From contig RDEW01000008.1 of NCBI GenBank assembly GCA_011109175.1, positions 175,145 to 239,144 on the forward strand: 64,000 bases of DNA, given 5' to 3'. Both the position numbers and the translations under genes were made by a program. Source of the stretch: Dicyema japonicum. Lineage: Eukaryota > Animalia > Dicyemida. Below the pieces are notes generated by a model. That model was not told the DNA's origin, searched no databases, and saw only the letters and a list, made by a program, of their open reading frames with translations. Each line of letters begins with the position of its first letter. Position 1 is the first letter of the stretch. Below, in pieces: positions 3,185-61,838 of the stretch.

Positions 3185-3300
3185 ATTTATTAACCCCGGA
3201 TACACCTAGAAAGAAGTTAAATTAAACAATTAATTAATAAGATGCCCATACTTGCAGTTGTGGAAAACCTTCCAGTGGAGTGGGGGAGAACAAATGAAAG
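3185..3300 (-). mobile_element. 3' terminal fragment of the stem-loop LINE family (5' arm of hairpin deleted)
   Basis: Matches 12610-12775 in reverse: CTCCCCCACTCCACTGGA...CCACAACTGCAA and CTTCTTTCT(A/C)GGTGTATCCGGGGTTAAT. Confidence 0.75.
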
Positions 3301-4496: not shown

Positions 4497-4849
4497 GTCC
4501 ATATTGAAATCATCTAAAATTATATTCCTTCAAAAAGAGATGCAAATCGTCAAAATTTCCTGAGCTTGATACTATGATATTAGAATGGATGGATTTGATG
4601 GATTCTAATGGTATTTTTAATTTGTTTATGTTGCTGAAAATTTATCAATTAGTGATTTCAAGAATTCTAAAAAAATTTATTACATAATTAAAAAAGACAT
4701 GGTTTTTGAATAAAGAAATGATAACTGACACAGACCTGACCTAAAAGGATTTGAGAAGACTTTTAAGAAATTTCCAAACATTATAAAGAAGGCGAAAATT
4801 ACAATATGGACGAGATAGGGCTTTATCATAAACTGATTACCTCCATATA

Positions 4850-5820
4850 ATAATAATAACACCAGAGACCACGGTTACACAAACTAACTAATCACTTGAT
4901 CCCAGCACGTTCTAGCAGAGACCTCGTCTTAGCCCGATGCTCCTCCCTCGTCCCTACACAAGCACGTATTGGTCGAGTGACTGGAACTTCGCAGTCACGA
5001 CGGCGTGTTCCGTGGTTCATTCTTATCAAGGCTTCAAAAGGCATTAGTGGTTGGAGTTCTACAGGAATCCAGCGTACCGTGAATTTGGAGGCTCTTCTCT
5101 GGCTAGCCTCGATCTTCAAGACATTCGTCCAAGAGATCAGTGGACCCCATATACCACATGCATAAGAGATGCATGGTTCTATGAATTGTTTATATATATT
5201 GCTCAAAACAGAATGCTTTCCGATCTTCCATAAGCATGTGAGACATTTCAGAACATTAGTTTTCTTTCGCATTTCGTAATTACGTTTTCAACATGGGGAG
5301 CGAATGACATATGTATGTCAAAAGTCACCCCAAGAATCCTTTGGGATTTTCTGAAAGGAATAGCTTCCTTGATTGTTTTCCTTCAGTTCGACCGTCCGTC
5401 TTCCCAGTCTCTTGTCTGAAGTAAATAGGGTTGTGACGGACTTTTCGCTGCTAGTAGTTAGGCGATTCTTCGATAGCCATTTGTCAAGACGGTACATATT
5501 TTCTTGCAATTTCGAGATGGCAATTTGGATGTCCTGATCGCGTGACGCAATGACGATGTCGTCGGCATAAGTTAGAATAACATCATTTTTGGAGTCTGGA
5601 GTAGGGAGGTTGAATAAAACTGGAGACAAAAAGGATCCTTGGGGAACCCCATTAGGGAGAAGCCGTGAAATAGATTTTGACTGTCAAATGCAGACGCGTC
5701 CGCTCCGACCACTAAGGAAGTTAGCTAGCCAGAGTTTGAGCTTTCCAGGGATCTTTGTTGGTAAATTTTCCAAGTAAGAATTCTCCTTGACACAGAGTAG
5801 AAAGCCTTGTGGACGTCTAT
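4850..5820 (-). mobile_element. 5'-truncated APE-type LINE (RT and C-terminus), same family as 13090-14625
   Basis: GVPQGSFLSPVLFNL, YADDIV, YKQFIEPCISYACGIW. The C-terminus VGTREEHRAKTRSLLERAGIK* aligns with VGTMEDHRRRMAQVIAKTGIT* at 14558. Confidence 0.85.
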
Positions 5821-11200: not shown

Positions 11201-12460
11201 TGTCTTGGATTTCCAATAAATTTAGGTATATTCACCCCCAACTGAATTAAACTGTACCTCGAAGTGTTTGGCAATATGGTTTGCTTTATCCTCTGGGTTT
11301 TGTAAATAATGACCCGCGTTGTCGCAGATTTTCAGCAGCTTTTTCGCAGTTCCTCGTGTAAGTAATTTAACAGGGAAAACATTCGTCTTCCATACTGACA
11401 GTTTTCAATTTCAGTCGCCTTATCGTCCAAATATTTGTGCCTAATGTCATTCGACCGTTTTTTATCAAATATGATATTTGATTACGTTTTTTCTTTAATG
11501 CACTTTTATTCGAATTTTAACTTCCCAGTTTTGAACGTATTTCCTTCTGCAGTTCCGACAATTCTCTTATTACGGGGTCATGAATAACTATTCCGGTCTT
11601 TTTCCTGGTATCCAACAGTCTCTGTCGCCGACAGTGTTAAGATATCCAGTCGAAGGGGTGCTACTGGTTTAAACATCCCGCAACCGTTTAGAGACATTTT
11701 GTTGGTATCTCTTTTTCCGAGTGTCAAAAGTCAACAATTCCACAGCCATACGTTATTTAGAGTTACTCTTTTTCTTTACTCCTTCAATTCCGAAGTATCG
11801 TTTAGGATTTAATCTGGCCACTGTCAGTTATAGTCCTTCCATAACTCATAGAGTCTGACAACAGTCTCTTTAAAGAGATTGGGCAGATAATATAATCAAT
11901 TTGGTTATAAATATACGTGTTATCGCCGTCTTTGGACTTTCTTGTGCCAACCCAGGTGGTTTTGTGCTTTGCAGGGTATTCAAACGTGGTTTTGCATAGA
12001 TACAAATTTGATGAATTACAAAAATCAACGATAGAGTGTCCAGAGAGATTTCGATATCCTCTGCCATGTTTTCCCATTTCTTAATCCTTCTCATGTCTGC
12101 TTTAGCATTCCAATCACCACAGAAGAACGTTAGTGTAGATTTATGAATTTGCATATGTGTTTTCAACAGGATTTTGTAAAACTCGTCCAACTCGTCCATA
12201 TTTCTTGAAACTCTGCCCATGTGCGGAACATATAGTTGATAACAGTCATCATAGTATTGTTCGTGGGCGATAAACGGAATTGCATTACTGCCACACGATC
12301 ATTGGCTCCATACTTTATACACGTAGTTGATTAGGTTCCAGTTGATTGCAGAACCAAAACCGTAGTGACGATTGTCTGATGGGAGTAAGATATCCTGTAG
12401 TTTCTAAATGGTTCTTCGTCTCCAAGAGCATTATTTGTCTCTTGTAAGCAGCTATTTAAA
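8250..12460 (-). mobile_element. degenerate RTE-clade LINE, interrupted by a Tc1 element at 8558-10071
   Basis: CLQET, CGDWNAK, IYNQIDYII, GTPQGDSL, LYADNV and WQLFGHILRL motifs. Removing the Tc1 and one TA restores the reading KISNEK-LYALCKS. Confidence 0.9.
8558..10071 (-). mobile_element. Tc1 IR/DR DNA transposon, 1514 bp, pseudogenised DD34E transposase (about 8810-9745)
   Basis: TIRs of about 206-212 bp carry internal direct repeats CCCGTGCA(A)TGTTACCGCCA, and the TSD is TA. Protein motifs: ISKVASTLGIGRSTV (HTH), IFSDE, EQDGAPSH, QSPDLNIIENCW, with in-frame stops. Confidence 0.92.
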
Positions 12461-12790
12461 TAGTCGCGTGGCGCCATGTGGTGCTTCGTGGCTAATTGGT
12501 TGAAGTTTCAGTTTTGTTTTCTCTGTCCTCCTCTTTCTTCCTATTAGAGTGGCGTCATGTGATCCAACTGTCTAGGTGGCGCCCACTGCCAGGCCGGTAC
12601 GAAAAAGGATCATTTGCTCTCCCCCACTCCACTGGAGTGGTTTCCACAACTGCAACTATGGACGTCTTTCACCCTTTGTGTTGATTCCGGATGGACTCTT
12701 TCTGTAAAAGTGGAAACTGGATACACTTAATTAGTTGTTTACTTTAACTTCTTTCTCGGTGTATCCGGGGTTAATTAATGATAATAATGT
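12460..12790 (+). mobile_element. 3' end of a divergent member of the stem-loop LINE family
   Basis: A frame ending ...SVKVETGYT* is followed by the terminal hairpin (12717-12768), GGGG and an AT-rich tail. Confidence 0.7.
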
Positions 12791-13089
12791 AAGCAGCAGA
12801 TATTAATTTTGTAACGTGACAGATCTTCAGATAGTTGTTCCCTCTTGCTTAGAGATGAGAGGCCTCGAACTAAGAGTTTGAATTTTAGCATGATAAATAC
12901 ATTTTTTCCAAAGAAAAACAGAAGCACGTCACCACTTCAACCAACAAGTTTATTAAAAAAATTTAATAGATCAAGAATTATTGTTAATTGCGACAAATTA
13001 ATATTATTATTAAAAAACACTTTCATAATTGCGCCAAAAACTCCATATATTAATAACTCCGGTTAGTGTGGATTTTGAATGTTAGCGTG

Positions 13090-14625
13090 GTGTCATGTGG
13101 CTCACCAGAAACGGTCTCACCCATTCCAAAATGGAACGAAAAGAGCCAACAGCTTCTCCCCACCGTCCGGTGGTCCTCTCATCTCCTGTGTCTTCGACCC
13201 TGTCTGGTGTCCCCATTTATCAAAACTTTTGATTCTTCTATGTGGGGACGTCGAAAACAATCCTGGTCCATGGAGATGTTTTACAATTATACAACTGAAT
13301 ACGAATGGGATCAGGAAGAAAATCTTTGAACTCCGGGCACTCCTCCGCGAAAATGAGGCTGACCTCGCTTTAATACAGGAGTCAAAGCTATCTCCCTCCA
13401 TACCAACACCCTCTTTTCCCGGATGGTTTCCTCCGCGTAGGTCCACCGCTACATACTTGGCTACCCTATCGCAGTTCATTGCCGATGGTTTTAACACCCA
13501 TCCCCCGTTTCACAAACCACAATCTTGGTTTCTATTGACATCAACAAAGCTTTTGACATTGTTTCGAGAAAAATCCTGGTAGGAAAAATATTTTCTACTA
13601 ATATTCGTCCGAATGTGAAATTATGGCTTGCCAACTTTTTGTCTGGAAGACGTGGAAGAGTAGTCAGTGGTGATCTCAGATCTAGATCACGATTACTACC
13701 GAACGGGGTACCACAGGGGTCTCCACTTTCACCAATTCTATTCAACTTATTCCTACACGACAAACCTAATGATGGAGACGAAGATTCCCTCCTATTTTCC
13801 TACGCAGACGATGTAGTCATTGCATTACGGAACCGTTCGACGCAAGTCACATCTTTAAAAACTCAGACAAAATTGAACATTCTCCACGATTGGATTGTTG
13901 GCAATCGACTAACGATTTCTGCAACCAAGTCTATCTGTTCCACATTCATGTCGGACCGTCGTTCAATGATGAACCGAGTCTTTTCATTGGTCCCACTCGG
14001 ATTCCAGTGACAAGGTCCCCCACTGTTTTTGGAGTCAAGTACGACAGCCTTCTCAAATTCAACTCCCACGCAACAGACATGATCACCAGGGGCCTCCAGA
14101 AAGCTAACGTTATACGCGCCCTTGTCCGGAGGACCACGAGGAACATGGACTTTTCCGTTTCTACTCTCTACCAACAAACAATCGCGCCTGCCATTGAGTA
14201 TGCCTCCGTTGCATGAAGATTCGGGCTATCGGAGTCTTTGGTCCAAAGAATCAACTCGATATACCGGAAAACAATCAGTATGTTTTCCCTACGTAATGGA
14301 TCAACAGTCGACCCACTACTCATGGAAGCTAAGATCCGTAGTCGTGGCTCCGGATTTCTTCGCCTCTGTGAGGAAGATGGAAATCCGCTTCGCTTGATCC
14401 TTTCCAAGGCAAGAAAAAACCGATTGGATAAAAAATTCCCCTCCCCGATCGGATTCCTCTGCAAGAGCGAGAGAAGGCTCTTCCGGAAAGTAGTGGGGAC
14501 GATGGAAGATCACAGACGTCGAATGGCACAAGTGATTGCGAAAACTGGGATCACCTAACTGTATGACGCTTTTGTCTTTCTTTCTCGGTGTTCCCGGGGT
14601 TATTAAAATAAAATAAAAATATATT
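13090..14625 (+). mobile_element. internally deleted APE-type LINE with 2A-like peptide (clade unresolved: L2/CR1/ingi-like)
   Basis: LLILLCGDVENNPGP precedes IIQLNTNGIRKK...IQESKL (APE N-terminus). The sequence then jumps directly to RT: RRST, SIDINKAFDIV, GVPQGSPLSPILFNLFL, YADDVV. The ORF ends KTGIT*, followed by a hairpin and A-rich tail. Confidence 0.88.
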
Positions 14626-14677
14626 AATAACTTTAATAAATTACAAACTATTTACTTATATGTAATGTCAGATATTG

Positions 14678-14788
14678 AACACGTTGCTGGTTAATGGTTG
14701 TTGTTGATAAGAATCATCTAAATTCATCGAATTATGCGGACTTCTGTGCCGAATTGAGTAAAGAAAACCCCAATCGAACGTCCGCCGA
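14678..14788 (+). mobile_element. 5' snippet of the R4-like RLE element (also at about 40200-40300)
   Basis: Aligns with the reverse complement of 42455-42562 and reads MVVVDKNHLNSSNYADFCAELSKENPNRTSAE. Confidence 0.8.
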
Positions 14789-14793
14789 AAAAA

Positions 14794-14935
14794 AATCCCA
14801 CCAGCAAGTGGGATTCTTCACGTCTGACGATCCTTCCTTTGGCATAGGTAGCCAGAGTACCTATGCCACATAGGAGTTTCACTACTCCTACCTTCGGCAC
14901 TTCGAGCCTAACTAGTGTAGTAAGCCGCCCGAATA
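14794..14935. ncRNA. candidate structured RNA element: cluster of four hairpins (unidentified; second copy about 40297-40440)
   Basis: Perfect stems AATCCCAC/GTGGGATT (8 bp), GGCATAGGTA/TACCTATGCC (10 bp) and TAGGAGT/ACTCCTA (7 bp), plus an imperfect fourth. On the minus strand the last hairpin is followed by a T8 run. Confidence 0.35.
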
Positions 14936-15349
14936 CATGATTGTTGTGTTTTACCTATATTTGAAATTTTCTTATTCATATGACATATAATCGATACTGG
15001 GCAAGTTCTAAATCATAAGTTGTTCCTCATCGGTAATTGTGACAATAGACATGATCTTTTTTCGTAATTTAGAAAATTCTTTGTGCGAGAGTCCCTGATT
15101 ACACATCTCAGAGTTACGTTCAATAATATCGAGGCCGCATCTTTTAGGATTTCATAAGCCACTCAGTTTAACCGCATCGTCCCATCATCCAAATATCAAT
15201 AATTGATAAAAGTGCCATTTACAAGGCCTGCCTCGTCGACTTCTACTAAAAGACCACGGTAAAACCAAACTAATTATCACGTGATCTCGACGATGACTTC
15301 TCTTCAATTGTTCCAAAATTTTACTCCTAGTTTCCTGGAGGGAGTTCGA

Positions 15350-16640
15350 CCCCTGAAAACGAATTGATATTTTTTAGATCCCCGATCATCAGGAGTGTGA
15401 TGAAGCATGTATTCCTTGACAAAAAAACAACTCCTATGCAAATCGCTGAATAGATTACAAATACTTGACTCACAGCACTATTCCTCATGAATAGAAGTTT
15501 TAACATTCAGAGAATCGCTTATTTACTCAGGGCAAAACCGTAATATTCCCAACTAGAGCAGTTTGAGCATTTTGATTTGTCTTTCCTCAGCTCTACGGAG
15601 CAAATATTTAATGTCAAATTCGACGATGCTACATGGAAGCAAGCTACACTCTCAGTTAGATTTGGGAACCTTGGAATCCGTCGTACTTTGGACGTCTCAC
15701 TTCCTGCACATCTGTCTTCACTCACGGCCTGTAAACCTTTGGTCAGGAGGATTCTACACTCCCTACCCGATTTCTCAATTGACCTAGACATAATTTACGC
15801 ACGGAAAGCCTGGAATGCCACCAACCTCTTCCTACCACTTTTACAAGACTTTCAGCCAAACCTGGACAATTTATTATGTTGGACTCTTACTGGAATCAGC
15901 CAATCAGCACCGACGCGCTTGTTTGCATTCGAGGAATTCCCCGAGAGAGGTGCCTGCTCAAAGCCATTCCCAATGGAGTTCTGGGTACCTTCCTGGATGA
16001 TGGATGCGTCTGTATTGGGATCTCATTGCGACTGTGATTAAAAGTATGTATTCAACATCCGTGCCGATACGGAGACAAGATCGACTGTTTTGGCCTACAC
16101 TCTCTCTCCTGCAGGAAGAGTGCAGGCATATTTCCCAGACACATGGCCATGAATGAACTCGTTAGGCGAGCTTTTGACGCCGCCGGACATCCCTCCATGC
16201 TCGAAACTGTCGGCCTTTGCAGACGGGACGGTAAACCAGATGAGATTAGAATCTTTTCATTTGAAGGCAAGAAACCATTTGTCTGGGACGTTACCTGTAA
16301 CGACACAATTGCGTCTTGCAACCTACTCTAGAGTGCCTCTGAAGCCTGTTCTGACACTGAGAAGTCCAAGAAGATGAAACGAGAATAGTACGCTGTCTTA
16401 CCCAATTATTTTTTGTTTGTTCCACTCGCCGTTGAGACGTCTGGTTCCCTTGCCCATGGGACGCAGGAATTCTTGAGTCGTCTAGGAAATCAGATCGTTA
16501 CACGAAAAAAGAACCTCGTGTTCGCATCTGGCTATTCAAGCGACTCTCGCTCGCTATCCTGAGAGGGAATAGTCACGCAGTCAGGGCAGCGTCTATATAA
16601 CCTTTTACTCTGCTTTCTTACTTCAAATTAGTCCAGTATA
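15350..16640 (+). mobile_element. degenerate CRE-clade RLE retrotransposon (RT C-terminus, CCHC, PD-(D/E)xK endonuclease)
   Basis: WKQATLSVRFGNLGIR, RHMAMNELVRRA, DGKPDEI, VWDVTC, LAVETSG, with frameshifts. Confidence 0.85.
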
Positions 16641-27356: not shown

Positions 27357-27428
27357 TCCGCGTTGGTCTAGTGGTTAAGATTTCGGATTTTCATTTCGGA
27401 TACCCGGGTTCGATTCCCGGACGCGGAA
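27357..27428 (+). tRNA. trnE: tRNA-Glu (TTC)
   Basis: Acceptor stem TCCGCGT/ACGCGGA, D loop with TAGTGG, anticodon loop TTTTCAT, T arm CCGGG-TTCGATT-CCCGG. A T-run terminator follows immediately downstream. Confidence 0.95.
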
Positions 27429-39120: not shown

Positions 39121-39530
39121 TAACGTTAGGAATTTAACAATTTTATTTAAGTCTCAATTAATCGAATCCTCTTAGAGTCAGGCTCATAGGCACTTTCTGA
39201 GTTGTAGTAAATATTTTGGACCGTCATGGTAAACTGTTTAGAGATTATTCTCAAGTTCTCTATGCTCTGTCCTAAATCGCAATTAGCGCGGCCTGGATTA
39301 AGCTGAGCTTCTGGGATGTTTCCGCATGATATGTGAATGTAGTACAAGGGTTTAACAGATTATGGTCAATTGTATAGACCAGGCATGTCAACTCAAGAAG
39401 TTCTAGGGACGCACAAGATAATTTAAGTATAAGACGGGAAACATTAACAAATCTGAAAAGCACCGTAATCTGGAATGAAGTGTATTTAATAATTACACAA
39501 CGCCAATTATAACAATTTTAATCATTTCCA

Positions 39531-41380
39531 GACAAGGTCCCCCACTGTCCTTGGAGTCAAGTACGACTGCCTTCTCAAATTCAACTCCCACGCAACAGAC
39601 ATGATCACCAGGGGCCTCCAGAAAGCTAACGTTATACGCGCCCTTGTTCGGAGGACCACGAGGAACATGGACTTTTCCGTTTCTACCTCTACCAACAAAC
39701 AATCGCGCCTGCCATTGAGTATGCCTCCGTTGCATGGAGATTCGGGCTATCGGAGTCTTTGGTCTAAAGAATCTACTCAATATACCGGAAAACAATCAGT
39801 ATGTTTCCCTACGTAATGGATCAACAGTCGACCCACTACTCATGGAAGCTAAGATCCGTAGTCGTGGCTCCGGATTTCTTCGCCTCTGTGAGGAAGATGG
39901 AAATCCGCTTCGCTTGATCCTTCCCATGGCAAGAGAAAACCGATTGGAGAAAAATTCCCCTCCTCGATCGGATTCCTCTGCAAGAGCGAGAGAAGGCTCT
40001 ATCGGAAAGTAGTGGGGACGATGGAAGATCACAGATGTCGAATGGCACAAGTGATTGCGAGGAAACTGGGATCACCTAACTGTCTGACTCTTTTTTCTTT
40101 CTTTCTCGGTGTTCCCGGGGTTATAAATAAAATAAAAATAAAAATATATTAATAACTTTAATAAATTACAAACTATTTACTTATATGTAATGTCAGATAT
40201 TGAACACGTTGCTGGTTAATGGTTGTTGTTGATAAGAATCATCTAAATCATCGGAATTATGCGGACTTCTGTGCCGAATTGAGTAAAGAAAACCCCAATC
40301 CCATCAGCAAGTGGGATTCTCCACGTCTGACGATCCTTCCTTTGGCATAGGTAGCCAGAGTACCTATGCCACATAGGAGTTTCACTACTCCTACCTTCGG
40401 CACTTCGAGCCTAACTAGTGTAGTAAGCCGCCCGAATACCTGATTGTTGTGTTTTACCTATATTTAAAATTTTCTTATTCATATGACATATAATCGATAT
40501 TGGGCGAGTTCTAAACCATAAATTGTTCCTAATCGGTAATGGTGACAATAGACATGATTTTTTATCGTAATTTAGAGAATTCTTTGTGCGAGAGTCCCTG
40601 ATTACACATCTCAGAGTTACGTTCAATAATATCGAGGCCGCATCTTCTAGGATTTCATAAGCCACTCAGTTTAACCGCATCGTCCCATCATCCAAATATC
40701 AATAATTGATAAAAGTGCCATTTACAAGGCCTGCCTCGTCGACTTCTACTAAAAGACCACGGTAAAACCAAACTAATTATCACTTGATTCCGACGATGAC
40801 TTATCTTCAATTGTTCCAAAATTTTACTCCTAGTTTCATGGTGGGAGTTCGACCCCTGAAAACGAATTGATATTTCTTAGATCCCCGATCATTAGGAGTG
40901 TAATGAAGCATGTATTCCTTGACAAAAAAACAACTCCTATGCAAATCGCTGAATAGATTACAATTACTTGACTCACAGCACTATTCCTCATGAATAGAAG
41001 TTTTAACATTCAGAGAATCGCTTATTTACTCAGGGCAAAACCGTAATATTCCCAACTAGAGCAGTTTGAGCATTTTGATTTGTCTTTCCTCAGCTCTACG
41101 GAGCAAATATTTAATGTCAAATTCGACGATGCTACATGGAAGCAAGCTACACTCTCAGTTAGATTTGGGAACCTTGGAATCCGTCGTACTTTGGACGTCT
41201 CACTTCCTGCACATCTGTCTTCACTCACGGCCTGTAAACCTTTGGTCAGGAGGATTCTACACTCCCTACCCGATTTCTCAATTGACCTAGACATAATTTA
41301 CGCACGGAAAGCCTGGAATGCCACCAACCTCTTACTGCCACTTTTACAAGACTTTCAGCCAAACCTGGACAATTTATTAT
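39531..41380 (+). repeat. 1.85-kb direct duplication of 14009-15877
   Basis: Near-identical text, including identical ORF translations (15563/41066 and 15519/41022). The copy ends at the single n at 41381. Confidence 0.95.
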
Positions 41381-41599
41381 NTTGTAGATCCCATCACAAC
41401 CAGGGGCCTTACAATTCGGCAAATATGAATCTTTGTTCAAATACATTTTTCGAGAATTTCAACACCAGTCATCCTTTTTCCAATATTAAAACTTTCCGAA
41501 TTTAGACTCCTTTTTTCCATAATTCTTCGCAAAAATCTGCGCATTTTTCATTATCAATTGAGATATTAATATTATTTTGTCCTGAATTCAAGTTGTTGT

Positions 41600-42562
41600 A
41601 GAAGGACCTTTCTATTCAATTCGACCATTTGTTTGTCCATACGAAAATTCATTTTCGATTCAAATATCGATATTTTTTCTCCAAGACTTTAATCTTATCT
41701 TGGATAAAAGACGTAATTCTGGTCCTTTTTCCGGATTGTTTTTTCCTGTAACCAACTATCGTCAGTAGAAAGAGTCTTCGTAAAAATCTTTTCAATAAAA
41801 ACAGAATGTGATCTCCATTGTTCAATTTTCTTAGTCATATCCTCTATCCATTTTAAGAGCTCAAATTTCTTTGTAGTAAGAGATTGATAGGCAGTTTGCC
41901 CAGCATGAATAATAGAGGAAATTTGATCAATCGACGTTGGGTGATAGACTTTAATCCAAGCATTAATAGCATGGTTCAGGCATTCGAGAATATCCACCTT
42001 TACATAAGGAATTTTCTTCGTACGGGGTCTTGAAGAATGGTCAATTGAATGATTCGTCGGTAACTCATCAATAAAAGTAAGTTCACAACAAGTATAAAAC
42101 CTGTCCTCAATAAACGTCGAAGACATATCAGGCTTAGAATCTGAGGTCACCTTCGTATCATGTACATTGCTTGGTAATTGTTGACGTTTTTTGGGGTATA
42201 TCAGTCTTCTGAACTCAGACATTGTTATTTCCTCTCCAAACGTAGACTTGAACCATTCCAAGAAAATAGCCCACCCACTTCTGGGGACACGACCGAGTCT
42301 AGAGCGCGTGCTTTCAATAACCAAGGTAGGCAGTTTTTCTCGACAATCAGCTGTTGAGAAAGACATTATTGTTCGAAAAACCGGAAATTTCGTGTTGATT
42401 TGCTGAGGACGAATCCTAGCAGCATCCACGTCGAAAACATGTCGGACAAACTCGGTGGCCGTTCGATTTGGGTTTTCTTTTCTTAATTCGGCACAGAAGT
42501 CGGCATAATCCGATGAATTTAGATGGTTCTAATCAACAACAACCATTTACCAGCAACGTGTT
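41600..42562 (-). mobile_element. 5' part of an R4-like RLE retrotransposon ORF
   Basis: 244-aa ORF containing RPRTKKIP, which I recall from the N-terminal region of R4-like elements. Its 5' end is repeated at 14678 and 40200. Confidence 0.55.
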
Positions 42563-42649
42563 CTATATTGTTATAAAAATTAATATTAATATTTTTATAT
42601 ATGTATATTAAAAATTATTTAAAATAATTAAATTACACGTTTCACAATA

Positions 42650-49762: not shown

Positions 49763-49900
49763 ATTATTATTATTATTATTACCCCCAGGATCACTGGGTC
49801 AAAGAGAAAGAAATAAAAGTACTCATCTAACTAAGTGATCCCAGACCGACAAAGGTGATGACGAGTCCGGGGGGGTCGAGAATCCTGAACAACTCTTTTC
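49763..49900 (-). mobile_element. heavily 5'-truncated 3' end of the stem-loop LINE family
   Basis: Frame ends SGIT*, followed by hairpin CTGGGATCACT/AGTGATCCTGG, GGG and a (TAA)n tail. Confidence 0.75.
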
Positions 49901-49971
49901 ATTTGAACAGCTCTTCTCACGTCTCAAAATACACGCCAAATAATGCAATAATTTATCGATAGGTTCGTCAT

Positions 49972-52900
49972 TTATTATTTTATTTAAAGCACTCCCGAGA
50001 AGTCATAAAATTAATCAAGCCTCCCTTGTGCCGTATTTCTAGCCATCCTCTCTATCAGCCTTTTCCAGGACCCTCTACTTCGTGCCAGTTCCCTTAAGGT
50101 ATCTAGGTCGTCTGCGGAAGTGAGCTTCAGTCCCACAGCCGACAGGTCTCCATTCAAAATAGTTGGGAGTGTGACTCTTGGTCTTCCACGGAAACCGGCT
50201 CCCGTATGCATTAAGTAGTTTTCCATGGCAATATTCGCGGGTACTTGAGCATTTAGACGTAAGATATGTCCAAAGAGACTCCATCTTGATCTGAAGATCT
50301 CCTCGGATAGTATACCAGATTTGCACTTCGAGTAGAGGTCATTGTTTGAGATCTTCTTAGGCCACTTGATCTTGATTACTGATTTCAATTGTGTCCTGTG
50401 GAAAGCGTCAAGACGGTCCATCTCTTGTTTAGAGATTCCCCAAGTGCCTGAATTGTAGGTCAGGACGGGGATGACAAAAGCCTTATATATTCTGAGTTTG
50501 GTGTTTAATCCCATCCTCTTCTTATGACCCCACATATTCGATACTTTCTTTAGTGCACACATTGCGAGGATTTTCCTCCGAGAAACATCTTCTGAGTCCC
50601 CGAGAAGCGAACCCACCTTCTTTTGCTTTCTCCAAGACTCGTCCGATCTTCGATCATTGCGTGTAAGTGTTGTGAACTCTGTTTTATCGGTGTTAACGGT
50701 TAAGAACCATTTCGAGAATACGTGTGGAAGAACGTTAAGCATGTGTTGAAGTACTTGAATATCCTCAGAAACAAAGTCCAGGTCGTCCGCGTAGATTATC
50801 TCGTTATAATTGTTGCCAACCAGGGGTCTGAACTCTCTTAGTGCGGCCTCAAGGTAGACAATAAAGAGGACCGGGGATAGTGAGTCCCCCTGTGGAACTC
50901 CACGTGAGGTCGAAAAAAAGTTAGAGGTAGAGTCACCAATTTTGACGGCAAGTTGAGTGTTCCGCATGAGTAAGTGTATTATTTTGACATCGTCAGGCAG
51001 TAGAAAACTCTCCAACACTTCCATAAGTTTTCCACGGTCCACCGAGTCGAACGCACGGGACATGTCGATACCAAGTATCTCAATAGATTTTTTGTATTTT
51101 TGGCACAGGGCACAATACCACCTGTGCCCCCATACCACGTCAGCCGTGGACCTGCCCGTCCGGAATCCACTTTGGCCGTCCGAAAGAAATATGTTCACCC
51201 TCTCCTTTATTCGGTTTAAAGCAATGAGGGATAATGTTTTTCGTATGGAGGTTAGGAGTATAATAGGTCTGAAGTTGTGAGGGGGCCTTTACTTTTTCCC
51301 GGTTTTTGTAGTGGAATTAGCCACCCTTTTCCCAGTTCCAGTTCATCTGCACCCTCGAGAGACCGGTTGAAAATGTTAGTAATCATTTCAATTAGCTCCT
51401 CCGGGCCGTATTGTAAAAGTTCTGCAGTAATGAAGTCTGGTCCGGCAGATCTTCCGGTATTTAATTTTTTAATAGCTTGTTGAGTTTCGGATATGGTAAT
51501 AGGGCTAGTTAGAGTGTACTTGTAAGACTTCCGAGATTTCATTGCTTGGTCAGCCGCGTCCTGTTTGTTGAACATAAGGTCAAAATGGGATGCCAGAACG
51601 TTTGCTTTGTTAATGGTCCCGATAACGTCGTGACCAAGGTTGTCATGGACAGTTAACGAAATTGGACAGTTTTCTCTGCTAAGAAGCCGGATTGCTTTGA
51701 ACATTCTTGGTCCGTTCTTGTACTTTAATATGTCTGAGATTTTCTCCTCAGCTTCATTTTTGGCAAGGAATCTTTGTATTTGTTTGATCTTCGTTAAGAC
51801 TCTCCCTCTCTGGGTGCGCAGTACTTTGATATCTTCCGGAGCGTTTGTGTTTTCCATCCGGAGTCTGAGCTCTTTCTGTGTTACAGAGAGTTGTCCGATA
51901 TCCGGATTACATTGTTTGTGACGAGATTTGGTGATGTGACCAAGCACACTAAAGGCTGTGTTTTGGATAGCAACCACTATTTCATCCCATAAGCTGTTTG
52001 TCGGCTGATTTTGGTTAATACTGTTGATGCTATCTCTCAGAACTGCACTATAACGACATTTGGTGGATTCTTCGTAGCGTAACCTCTCAGTGTCGAAACG
52101 TACTGAGGTAAGGCCTTTGTGTTTCCCGTGTATTCCATGGATTCTTTTAAGTACTAGCCGGGCGACCACAAGTTTATGATCGCTACTTGTTTCAAGTCCA
52201 CCGTAAGATCTCGAGTCCTGTAGGAGGGCCTTCTGATGTTGCTTGCAGATAATATAGTCGATCTGATTGTATATATTGACTGTGTTTCCAGATTTGCCTT
52301 TTCTGGTACCAACCCACGTGGTCCTGTGTCTTGCCGGGTGCTTGAAACAAGTGTTGCATATGAGTAGGTTGAATGCCGTGCAAAATTGTATTAATGCCTC
52401 TCCGGGGATGTTACGGCGGTTTCTACCGTGGGATCCAATACACGTTTCACCAGGTCTTGCTTTTCCGGCCCTGGCGTTCCAGTCCCCGGCGATAAAAAGA
52501 AAGTAAGAGGATGAAAGTGAGTTGTACACACTTGTGAGAGTAGAGTAAAACGTATCCAGTTCTTCGATATTCGTTGATACACGTGCTCCGGTTGGGGCAT
52601 ATACATTTATGATGGAGATCACTGAGTTGAGTTTGTTTCCGCATTTGATTTGTAACACCGCGACACGGTCAGATACTGCCCATACTCTTGAGACACAGTG
52701 AAACAAGTGCCGATGAACAGCAAATCCGAGCCCATAGTGCCTGCAGTCTGGTGTGAGGGTCAAAAGGTAAAAATTCTGAAACAGTTCTGCAGATTGTTCG
52801 GTTATTTTCGTCTCTTGCAAACAACAGACAGAGATGTTGTATTTACTCAGATCACGCGTCAATTGTTGTTTCTTGTAGCACTGATTGAGGCCTCGGCAGT

Positions 52901-52988
52901 TGAGGGATCCAAGAGTGAGGGGAGAAACTGGTAAGCAATACGAAGAAGACATAGTGCAAGTAGAGGGACGTCACCACCTCAACCAGTA
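49972..52988 (-). mobile_element. full-length RTE-clade LINE (APE-RT, about 980 aa) with 13-bp TSD and one frameshift
   Basis: TSD ATAGGTTCGTCAT at 49959-49971 and 52989-53001. ORFs 51252-52952 (APE: GSLNCRGL, CCLQETK, AGDWNA, NQIDYI, SDHKLV) and 50011-51198 (RT: QSGFR, DMSRAFD, GVPQGD, YADD) join if one base is added to the G5 run at 51281-51285. Confidence 0.97.
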
Positions 52989-58694: not shown

Positions 58695-60159
58695 TTAAAC
58701 ACTCCCGGGAAATCAAAAATTAATTAGATTAATTAAGTTCCCCTTGTGCCACGTCCAGTATCCTCCCACACATCCTCTTCCATGTTCCCCTGTTCCGGGC
58801 CATTGCTCGTCTCCCGGGAATTTAAAAATTAATTAGATTAATTAAGTTCCCCTTGTGCCACGTACAGTATCCTCCCACACATCCTCTTCCATGTTCCCCT
58901 GTTCCGGGCCATTGCTCGTAGTGAGTCAAGATCTTCACCATTTCGTAGAGTTTTGTTTATTCGGATTAGGTCATCATTTAGTACTGAAGGCAACGTCACT
59001 CTAGGCTTGCCACAAAATGATCCCTTCAGTTGTGCGAAATGGTTTTCCATTGCAATGTTTGGTAGAGTCAACATATCCATTCGTAAGATGTGACCAAAAA
59101 GTATCCATCTAGCCATGAGAATCTCCTCTGATAATGGCCTTAAGCCACATTTTTTGTACAGTTCTGAATTTGATATCTTTTTCGGGAAATGTATTCTCAA
59201 AATGTTTCTTAGTTGATTTCTATGAAATTGATCCAGATTGTCCATTTCNNNNNNNNNNNNNNNNNNNNNNNNNNNNNNNNNAATGTATTCTCAAAATGTT
59301 TCTTAGTTGATTTCTATGAAATTGATCCAGATTGTCCATTTCACGTTTCGTAATCCCCCATGTCCCACAGTTGTATGTCAGGACTGGAACCACGAATGTT
59401 TTATACAATTTTAGCTTTGTATTCGTAGTTATGCTCTTCTTAGAACGCCAGATAGTTAAAAAATTTTTATATGCAGCAGTGGAAAGGATTTTTCTTTGGG
59501 TAACATCTTCTGAGTCTCCAAGTAGTGAACCAACTTTTTTATGCCTTCTCCATGATTCATCGTAAGTGCGTACAACTCGTAAAAGTTTTGTATATTCAGT
59601 TTTGTCTTGGTTGACAACTAAGAACCATTTAGAAAAGGTAAGTTCTTGAGAAAGTGATGAAGAATTTCAACATCTTCAGAAACAAAGTCAAGATCGTCTG
59701 CATATATTAACTCGATTATTTTGTTGTTCTCAATTAAAAGCCTGAAATCTCTCAGTGCAGCCTCCAGGTAGATTATGAATAGAACTGGTGACAGAGTCTC
59801 CTTGCGGAATTCCACGTGAAGTATAAAAGAATTCTGAAGTAGTTTTTCCGAGTTTGGTTGCTAGTTTCGTATTCTGCAGTAGTTTTTGTATAATTTTGAC
59901 ATCATCCGTTGTTAGGAAGCTTGTGAGTACTTCAAGAAGTTTGCCTTTATGAACTGAGTCAAACGCTCTGGACATGTCTATTCCAAGAACATATATGCAC
60001 TTTTTATATTTTTGGCATAAAGCACTTGATCATCTGTGTGTCCAAATGACATCGGCAGTGGATCTGCCTGACCGGAAACCACTTTGTCCTGGTGACAGAA
60101 AATACTCCACCTTGTCTTTGATTCTTTCCAATGTAATGATTGACAAGATTTTTCGCAGC
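58695..60159 (-). mobile_element. 5'-incomplete RTE copy with N gap and tandemly duplicated 3' end
   Basis: QSGFRSGRS, DMSRAFD, YADDL, YNCGTW and LFGHILR. The last about 110 bp are present twice (58701-58809 and 58810-58919). Confidence 0.9.
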
Positions 60160-61125: not shown

Positions 61126-61700
61126 CTAGCTCAATCTCCTCTTCTTGGGACCAGCCTCTATTGCCCGTTTAGGTTGTTCACGTGACGCCCACTCCGCATT
61201 CAGAGGCTACCCTGGGTTGACATTTTGTGCCATGTTTCTCCTCGCCAGGCATTGATATTACATTCTCCAGCTTGCATATTCTCCATAGTCTTACGCATTA
61301 CTAACGTTTGTGTATATGCTTTCACCATTTCCTCAACCTTGAGGGCATCCAGGTGAACCTTGATGAATCTTGAGACTATTCTCGAATAGTGATATAATAA
61401 TGAAATGGACAAGGCGTATGACAAATTGATGAAGGCATGTAGTAAAATCTTTAGTATCACTATTAACCCCGTATACTCCAATAAAGAAGTTGACAGCTAA
61501 GTGTATCCCGTCACAGAACGTAAAAAGTTTATAGCCGCGTGAGGCCAACGTTAGTGTGGTGCTATGTAGCTACTTGATTGGAGATTTATTTTGTTTCGTA
61601 TGTTTCTCTTCTTCCCTCTTTCATAGAGTGGCTCCCAGTACGAAGGTGACACAAAAAATGATCATTTACTCTCTTCTACTCCACTAAAAGGGTTCTCATA
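61126..61700 (-). CDS. probable unidentified spliced host gene convergent with FRG1 (3' part only)
   Basis: GC-richer, coding-like block with no TE motifs. Terminal frame reads ...EWASREQPKRAIEAGPKKRRLS* (NLS-like). I could not resolve the exon structure. Confidence 0.35.
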
Positions 61701-61838
61701 ACTGCAAGGTCTTNNNNNNNNNNNNNNNNNNNNNNNNNNNNNNNNNNNNNNNNNNNNNNNNNNNNNNNNNNNNNNNNNNNNNNNNNNNNNNNNNNNNNNN
61801 NNNNNNNNNNNNNNNNNNNNNNNNNNNNNNNNNNNNNN

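Follow-up and report, generated by a model that had tools for sequence, protein, structure and literature searches.

Background

The closest described counterparts of the element considered here are the 3' stem-loops of the long interspersed nuclear elements (LINEs) ZfL2 and UnaL2. In ZfL2, the stem-loop is essential for mobility and is bound by the region of the open reading frame 2 (ORF2) protein that lies between the endonuclease and the reverse transcriptase (RT), the stem serving general recognition and the loop specific recognition (PMC4176376). In both elements retrotransposition depends on the stem-loop, to which the ORF2 protein binds (PMC4176376, PMC1636434). Efficient mobility of UnaL2 requires a U-U mismatch in the middle of the stem and a bulged C, and slippage on the UGUAA repeats at the start of target-primed reverse transcription has been proposed (PMC1636434). 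For CR1, the RT has been proposed to recognise a hairpin together with a microsatellite (PMC8665684), and in tails common to short interspersed nuclear elements (SINEs) and LINEs, compensatory changes in the stem are an accepted sign of stringent recognition (PMC3747384). This report describes a hairpin of this kind in the dicyemid Dicyema japonicum, within a 64,000-nucleotide (nt) stretch of contig RDEW01000008.1 (here called the window; C356:175145-239144), where it lies at the extreme 3' end of several LINE families and of one SINE-like family, family A. By analogy with the systems above, and with a probability of roughly 70%, the hairpin would be the element through which the ORF2 protein binds and primes, in cis in the LINEs and in trans in family A.

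Recognition of LINE and SINE tails is well established, and a 3' hairpin as such is unsurprising. Ohshima and Okada reportedly put forward a model of SINE/LINE pairs with a common tail, among which partners of the CR1 and RTE clades predominate. The dicyemid hairpin would be a stringent-type LINE tail, which is a known kind, and its new feature is the overlap with the ORF. No paper in the literature searched in full text described a LINE 3' stem-loop with a coding arm that abuts the stop codon, and full-text searches for dicyemid transposons returned no description beyond a mention of LINE ORF2 copies. The genome of D. japonicum comprises 67.5 Mb in 377 scaffolds with 49% repeats (PMC6736024), and the tail provides an annotation handle for transposons that occupy about half of the genome and have so far been described only as repeats (PMC6736024).

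Like UnaL2 (with UnaSINE1/2), ZfL2-1 and ZfL2-2, the dicyemid elements end in a hairpin with a lower and an upper stem, followed by a short tandem repeat. As in UnaL2 and ZfL2, the tail is common to partner SINEs, and the stems are conserved while the loops vary. The U-U mismatch and bulged C of UnaL2 resemble the mid-stem U-U of several dicyemid families and the bulged C of family D. However, the stem-loop of UnaL2 and ZfL2 lies in the 3' untranslated region (UTR), whereas in the dicyemid elements the last ORF2 codons form the 5' arm and the internal loop begins with the stop codon. The two show no detectable similarity in sequence, and neither has an Rfam family. The CR1 elements of birds, crocodilians and turtles are comparable in that CR1-type RTs of birds and turtles are the nearest named relatives of the family B ORF2, but protein identity is about 30%, the repeat unit is A/T-rich and 3-5 nt long rather than ATTCTRTG, and the dicyemid hairpin overlaps coding sequence. 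Family A resembles the SINEs of common-tail pairs, since it bears the LINE tail of about 65 nt and inserts with target-site duplications; unlike those SINEs, its head contains no recognisable tRNA, 5S or 7SL, and its exact stem variant was found on no LINE.

Occurrence and common anatomy of the hairpin

The genome searched was the 67,542,437-base assembly of 377 scaffolds. An anchor pattern in which CAC, the stop codon, GTG, GG and GTWW are the only fixed elements, so that the stem can vary at its variable positions, matched 2,243 genomic sites, compared with 305 for the reversed control. A pattern that excluded families A to D matched 331 sites, compared with 7 in the control. The original prediction, made from the letters of the window, had assigned the copies to one LINE family and had proposed the collection of genomic copies and a covariance model as a check. 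A model built from four copies gave more than 150 genomic matches above 70 bits, and more than 100 of these were identical to the family A tail of the window (62 nt). Pattern listings and 269 kb of fetched DNA, on which the definition of the families rests, resolved many LINE families and a SINE-like family in place of the single one (at least ten families, with differing loops and with TAA, TAG or TGA as the stop codon).

The common anatomy comprised an 11-bp lower stem, an asymmetric internal loop that begins with the stop codon, an upper stem whose sequence varies and an apical loop of 5-7 nt. Downstream of the 3' arm came a run of G, UUA or UAA, and a microsatellite rich in A and T. The lower stem, the stop at the start of the internal loop, the upper stem and the G run with its A/T tail recur in more than 2,000 well-kept genomic copies. 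The 5' arm of the lower stem corresponded to the three terminal codons of ORF2 and two more of its bases, mostly encoding Gly-Ile-Thr, and in every coding family seen the stop codon followed it directly. An upper stem of 3-8 bp was found in every family folded, inside what had been taken for the loop, and its sequences were unrelated between families (for example GAC/GUC, GUUA/UAAC, an 8-bp stem entirely of A and U and an 8-bp G+C-rich stem). The TTTCTTTCTC tract, which had been described as kept in the loop, was indeed present in families A, B and C, but the sequence of the internal loop differed in the other families.

Conservation of the hairpin and selection on pairing

Between families, the hairpin and tail were 58-74% identical, compared with 48-53% for the 150 nt upstream, where the shuffled baseline was 49%, and the ORF2 proteins of families B and C were 38% identical. 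The hairpin is the only block conserved between families. It is very improbable that it is an inverted repeat without function, inherited from a recent common ancestor and not yet decayed. Such an origin would fit the almost invariant 5' arm and the youth of many copies (94-97% identical), but the hairpin has been kept where the adjoining 150 nt is at random-level identity, the changes in its arms are compensated or compatible with G-U pairing, and the ORF2 proteins of two families have diverged to the extent given above. In addition, the tail of a LINE on an octopus contig (see below) is 81-90% identical to many dicyemid copies, compared with 67-68% for its RT region.

Pairing was scored on a MAFFT alignment of 16 representatives that was not fitted to the structure, with 500 shuffles and with partners slid by 1-3 columns as controls. 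Standard pairs filled 89.5% of the cells, compared with 32-47% for slid partners and 82.9% for shuffled alignments, and none of the 500 shuffles reached the observed value, although with only 16 related family representatives this control overstates significance and gives no true probability. The covariation score was 0.42, compared with 0.29 for the shuffles and at most 0.22 for slid partners, and changes on both sides were seen in 5 of the 11 pairs among the 16 representatives. At the bulge of family D, MAFFT misaligned the 3' arm in two rows, which makes the pairing counts conservative there. Every comparative test run agreed with the central claim of the original prediction, namely that a conserved, covarying stem-loop occupies the very 3' end and that the last codons make up its 5' arm.

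Position 11, the third base of the Thr codon, was tallied in an unbiased listing of 100 genomic sites: of 18 rows with G, about 17 had a C partner and one a T partner (a wobble), C was found with G in nearly all rows, while the partner of T was mostly G or A, with U-U or U-C in two or three families. In the F families, G-C, G-U and A-U combinations occurred in steps at positions 4 and 5. Families B, F and K3 are fixed for a mid-stem U-U, and family D has a bulged C; the single T-T (U-U) mismatch reported earlier for the 14.5-kb and 40-kb copies recurred in all of the roughly 30 other genomic copies of family B.

G-U pairs accounted for 23% of the cells, and pairing on the antisense strand was 70%, compared with 89.5% for the sense strand. 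Because of these two values, the selected molecule is the sense RNA. They also bear on a structure at the DNA level, for instance a cruciform, a hairpin that primes the second strand, or a target mimic. The inverted repeat exists in the DNA too, but about one quarter of its pairs are G-U and would be A-C mismatches in the opposite strand or in an extruded duplex, so that a role for the DNA itself is hardly to be expected. Both this explanation and that of a repeat without function are disfavoured by the baseline identity of the upstream sequence and by the drop in antisense pairing.

Proposed role in reverse transcription

The binding and priming role proposed above is suggested by the match in anatomy with a stringent-type LINE tail. 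Three features of such a tail are found here: a 3'-terminal stem-loop before a tandem repeat, a stem with compensatory changes, and a tail common to LINEs and a SINE-like element. On this reading, the hairpin is a conserved 3'-terminal RNA element of related LINE families of the apurinic/apyrimidinic endonuclease (APE) type, and the abundant SINE-like element has copied their tail. The sequences show that the structure is conserved, where it lies, that the SINE-like element has it too and that the copies bear insertion signatures, whereas binding by the protein and priming are inferred. On the analogy with UnaL2 and ZfL2, the ORF2 protein would bind the stem-loop, with the lower stem providing general recognition, and the loop and upper stem providing family specificity. 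The adjoining microsatellite would be the start site of target-primed reverse transcription, and slippage during priming is proposed as the reason why the tails vary in length. Family A, which is non-coding, would be mobilised in trans via the same tail.

Several points weigh against this reading. Besides the overstatement by the shuffle control, the measure of changes on both sides (5, compared with 3.2 in the shuffles) was reached by 44 of the 500 shuffles, and folding z-scores were weak for several copies. The stems of some families contain a bulge or a U-U or U-C mismatch, and the near invariance of the 5' arm could be due in part to constraint on the protein or to a recent common origin. 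A LINE with the stem variant of family A itself was not found in the genome, where a pattern of GGATACACT plus TAG had 16 matches, mostly SINE variants. Finally, the function in D. japonicum rests on analogy with other systems.

The hairpin and A/T tail could instead define or protect the transcript end, through termination, polyadenylation or a block to exonucleases, and not serve as a handle for RT. This would be in keeping with the terminal position of the hairpin in all copies and with the AATAAA in the tails of families A and B, but the (TAA)n or (TTA)n tails of families C and D are without AATAAA. Furthermore, upper stems and loops that are specific to families and a tail shared with a SINE are what recognition by a cognate protein would predict, rather than a generic element, and the variable length of the microsatellite fits slippage during priming. 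A role confined to the transcript end is therefore considered unlikely.

Overlap with the ORF2 stop codon

The C-terminal peptides of the coding families were GIT, EIT, RIT or WII, each followed by the stop. In families B, D, F and G, a helix-like motif precedes the residues encoded by the arm (for example ...MRSLLERAGIT-stop), and the motif is also found in non-dicyemid relatives (...FLRTAGVI-stop and ...FLRDVGVT-stop). Families C and J have lost the upstream motif but keep the arm-encoded residues, which points to constraint on the arm at the RNA level. Variation in the 5' arm was almost entirely at synonymous third positions, namely stem positions 5 (Gly codon) and 11 (Thr codon), and the compensating or G-U-compatible changes fell on the non-coding 3' arm. 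The one non-synonymous double change, from ATC to TAC, was in the non-coding family A, where the 3' arm fully compensates for it. In other words, at least ten diverged families hold an 11-nt stretch both as Gly-Ile-Thr codons and as one side of an RNA stem, and the stop is always at the junction of stem and loop. This unusual layout offers a natural experiment in how RNA-structure and protein constraints are reconciled.

The position of the stop on top of the lower stem could also couple the hairpin to translation. A terminating ribosome would melt the 5' arm, and refolding on its release would hand the ORF2 protein its own RNA, resulting in cis preference; in a variant of this explanation, the hairpin would tune termination or read-through. 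The invariable placement of the stop directly after the arm in coding families agrees with such coupling, as do the stops in other frames that are often found on the 5' side of the internal loop, for example in families C and D. The non-coding family A, however, keeps the layout and amplifies well without an ORF, which indicates that translation through the arm is not needed for mobilisation, and the stop lies elsewhere in the closest non-dicyemid relatives. Coupling to translation is accordingly a doubtful explanation of the hairpin, and it may add to recognition by RT rather than replace it. It is similarly doubtful that the fixed stop at the junction of lower stem and internal loop is itself functional, with the ribosome holding the hairpin open until ORF2 release as a physical mechanism of cis preference; if this were true, family A would be a parasite that presents a pre-folded hairpin in trans. 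With a tail of about 65 nt, ORFs that look intact and a SINE partner, these elements are a compact system for asking whether termination couples to the loading of ORF2 protein in cis.

Family A, a SINE-like element

The hairpin at 12.7 kb had been interpreted as the end of an ORF2 with the C-terminus TGYT, but the element is a 335-nt non-coding retroposon. Twenty further copies aligned over about 300 nt and then diverged, and target-site duplications of 10-14 bp were found around five copies. The frame leading into TGYT-stop was open for only 13-58 codons in the family A copies and encoded no RT. Family A is a SINE-like non-autonomous retroposon, because it is a non-coding 335-nt unit with target-site duplications and no RT-encoding frame. 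The head of the window copy (12461-12494) contains a strong 34-nt G-U-rich hairpin (z -4.1). Neither Rfam nor ARAGORN gave a tRNA, 5S or 7SL match in family A, and Rfam over 12380-12800 gave no family at E <= 1. Only the hairpin and tail are common to family A and LINE families B and C, and from the common loop and tail the mobilising partner of family A would be a B-like LINE. At the far end of the window, a decayed A-like tail (61462-61513, minus strand) meets a diverged A-type head (61555-61707, plus strand) in a tail-to-head arrangement, with a run of N from near 61714.

Hairpin copies in the window

The positions of the copies and of the elements to which they belong are given in Table 1. 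The original prediction had placed the arms, stop codons and tails of all four hairpins exactly to the base. Window copies were folded with ViennaRNA (minimum-energy folds and single-sequence z-scores), and the 11-bp stem was the minimum-energy fold in all four. The z-scores were modest: -4.0 for the 12.7-kb copy of family A (11 bp, -20.5 kcal/mol), -2.3 for the 14.5-kb copy, -0.6 for the 40-kb copy and -1.9 for the 49.8-kb copy. The layout in which the 5' arm encodes the last residues and the stop follows immediately was as described, but within the window only the 14.5-kb copy closes a LINE ORF.

Table 1. Hairpin copies and associated elements in the 64,000-nt window (RT, reverse transcriptase; APE, apurinic/apyrimidinic endonuclease)
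Feature	Position	Strand	Details
Family A element, full length, 335 nt, without ORF2	12453-12787	+	unit defined by 21-copy alignment
Target-site duplication of window family A, 10 bp	12443-12452 and 12788-12797		TGTAAGCAGC
Family A hairpin, 12.7 kb	12717-12768	+	5' arm CTGGATACACT 12717-12727; TAA 12728-12730; 3' arm GGTGTATCCGG 12758-12768
Family A hairpin, inner part	12731-12757	+	internal loop and upper stem
Family A tail after hairpin	12769-12787	+	GGGG, then A/T tail
Decayed family A tail	3189-3252	-	5' arm damaged; covariance-model match, 34 bits, E 5e-7
Family A head match by the 3189-3252 tail	3239-3297		
Decayed A-like tail	61462-61513	-	arm CGGGATACACT, then TAG; covariance-model match
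Family B LINE copy, internally deleted	13079-14558	+	N-terminal leader and endonuclease start joined to RT
Last ORF piece of family B window copy	14238-14558	+	ends ...AKTGIT-stop, closed by TAA 14556-14558
Family B hairpin and tail, 14.5 kb	14545-14621	+	5' arm CTGGGATCACC 14545-14555; TAA 14556-14558; 3' arm 14587-14597
Family B after 3' arm, 14.5 kb		+	GGGGTTATTAAA, then (AAAT/AAAAT)n tail
Family B-type hairpin and tail, 40 kb	40066-40150	+	5' arm 40066-40076; 3' arm 40108-40118
Family C fragment, 140 nt, 5'-truncated LINE	49763-49906 (140 nt: 49767-49906)	-	95% identical to L058:886-1025
Family C hairpin, 49.8 kb		-	5' arm 49844-49834; TAG 49833-49831; 3' arm 49795-49785; then GGG and (TAA)n
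LINE of another family, nearly intact	50011-52952	-	566-aa piece with APE and 395-aa piece with RT
Family D hairpin and (TTA)n tail, decayed	4846-4905	-	5' arm CTGGGATCAAG 4905-4895; TGA 4894-4892
Family D window copy, remainder		-	18-nt loop; 12-nt 3' arm 4873-4862 with one bulged C
Family D RT-coding remains upstream of hairpin	4934-5764	-	

Family B and a segmental duplication

Whereas the family B copy in the window is internally deleted, other copies had open frames of 430-476 aa (lengths limited by the fetched flank) with an RVT_1 domain, ending in ...RRMAQVIARTGIT at the same stop. In 30 family B copies, the 3' arm was followed by GGGGTTATTAAA (GGGG plus 8 bases), an A3-4T repeat of variable length and unique flanks. 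The hairpins at 14.5 kb and 40 kb derive from one insertion: 14002-15881 and 39526-41384 share 95.7% identity over 1,887 nt, and the duplication spans 1.28 kb of non-LINE flank beyond the LINE tail. The 40-kb copy is therefore a segmental duplicate of the 14.5-kb copy and no independent insertion. Part of the duplicated flank (14672-14788) is repeated in inverted orientation at 42452-42568. The leader ORF of family B contains a 2A-like motif, ...LLCGDVENNPGP, just ahead of the start of the endonuclease, within 13210-13270.

Families C and D

The SGIT-stop described at 49.8 kb falls within a 140-nt 5'-truncated fragment in the window, but a 301-aa RT-bearing ORF does end there (...RSGIT-stop) in a less decayed genomic copy of family C (L058:886-1025). 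The ORF of the nearly intact LINE at 50011-52952 on the same strand ends in ...AQGRLD-stop, about 130 nt before the start of the family C fragment. A relative of this LINE, 52-55% identical, was found at 58838-60110 on the minus strand.

A weaker version of the hairpin had been noted at 4862-4905. It is real, but it lies on the minus strand and belongs, as a decayed copy, to a fifth family, D; a plus-strand fold of 4855-4915 revealed nothing. In this copy a C-to-A change at stem position 10 has removed pair 10, and the peptide ends AGIK-stop, compared with AGIT-stop in the master form, in which 11 bp are paired with one bulged C. The 5' half of family D had 544 genomic matches, compared with 0 in the control. 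Families C and D have stops in all three frames within 11 nt after the 5' arm (49833-49823 on the minus strand; L065:1512-1522), for example TGA-T-TAG-T-TAG. The end of the arm together with TGA forms a palindrome containing CACGTG, ATCACGTGAT, in families D and N.

Relatives outside the dicyemids

A word-based protein search with the family B ORF2 found marine-metagenome LINE proteins at 35-48% identity and an Octopus sinensis protein at 53% identity over 40% of the query. The analogy originally drawn with the L2 clade holds for the likeness of the tails, but the nearest named RT proteins are the avian and turtle CR1-type ones at about 30%, not L2. CR1 dominates in birds and turtles, and for this reason the elements are read here as belonging to the CR1/L2/Jockey-type supergroup. 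A protein atlas search with these RTs returned generic RT clusters only.

Among the metagenome relatives, the 3' end is either CUGGGGG followed by five bases and (CAA)n or GGTTATTAA(CTAA)n; the G run ahead of the microsatellite is thus shared. Their stops were located either upstream of the tail, at a distance of about 100 nt or of 14 nt, or within it, and folding demonstrated no homologous stem that overlaps the stop in these relatives. Two of them (L067 and L068) have G+C-rich 3' UTRs of about 100 nt in which stems that include the stop can be drawn, with z-scores of -0.7 and +0.1, no better than shuffles. The closest non-dicyemid relative (L069:2490-2575, from a JGI metagenome), with an ORF2 44% identical, is without a 3' UTR, and its ORF ends inside the GGTTATTAA(CTAA)n tail. 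Just before this tail is a candidate hairpin of about 19 bp that is wholly coding (z -1.05, from a single sequence). Since the stops of the relatives lie elsewhere and no homologous stop-overlapping stem was found in them, the layout with the stop after the 5' arm is specific to the dicyemid lineage, although it may extend to octopus.

The octopus match is on contig VCDQ01001570.1 of Octopus sinensis, the host species. This contig contains a decayed LINE (L071:12761-14625) with a tail hairpin at 14545-14598 like that of dicyemid family F (covariance-model E 0.07, family F loop type), for which the tail and RT identities are given above. The body of the LINE has 82-96% nucleotide identity to dicyemid C26:33213-34127, C24:817672-818139, C15, C28 and C45, mostly small scaffolds, and the flank of the octopus contig that is not repeat has no counterpart in the dicyemid assembly. 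The match reflects either host DNA contaminating the dicyemid assembly or transfer of a LINE between host and parasite.

Other features of the window

At the gathering score, the sole Rfam match in the whole window was a tRNA-Glu(TTC) gene at 27357-27428. A tandem array with a 21-nt period and about 12 units was observed at 990-1251.

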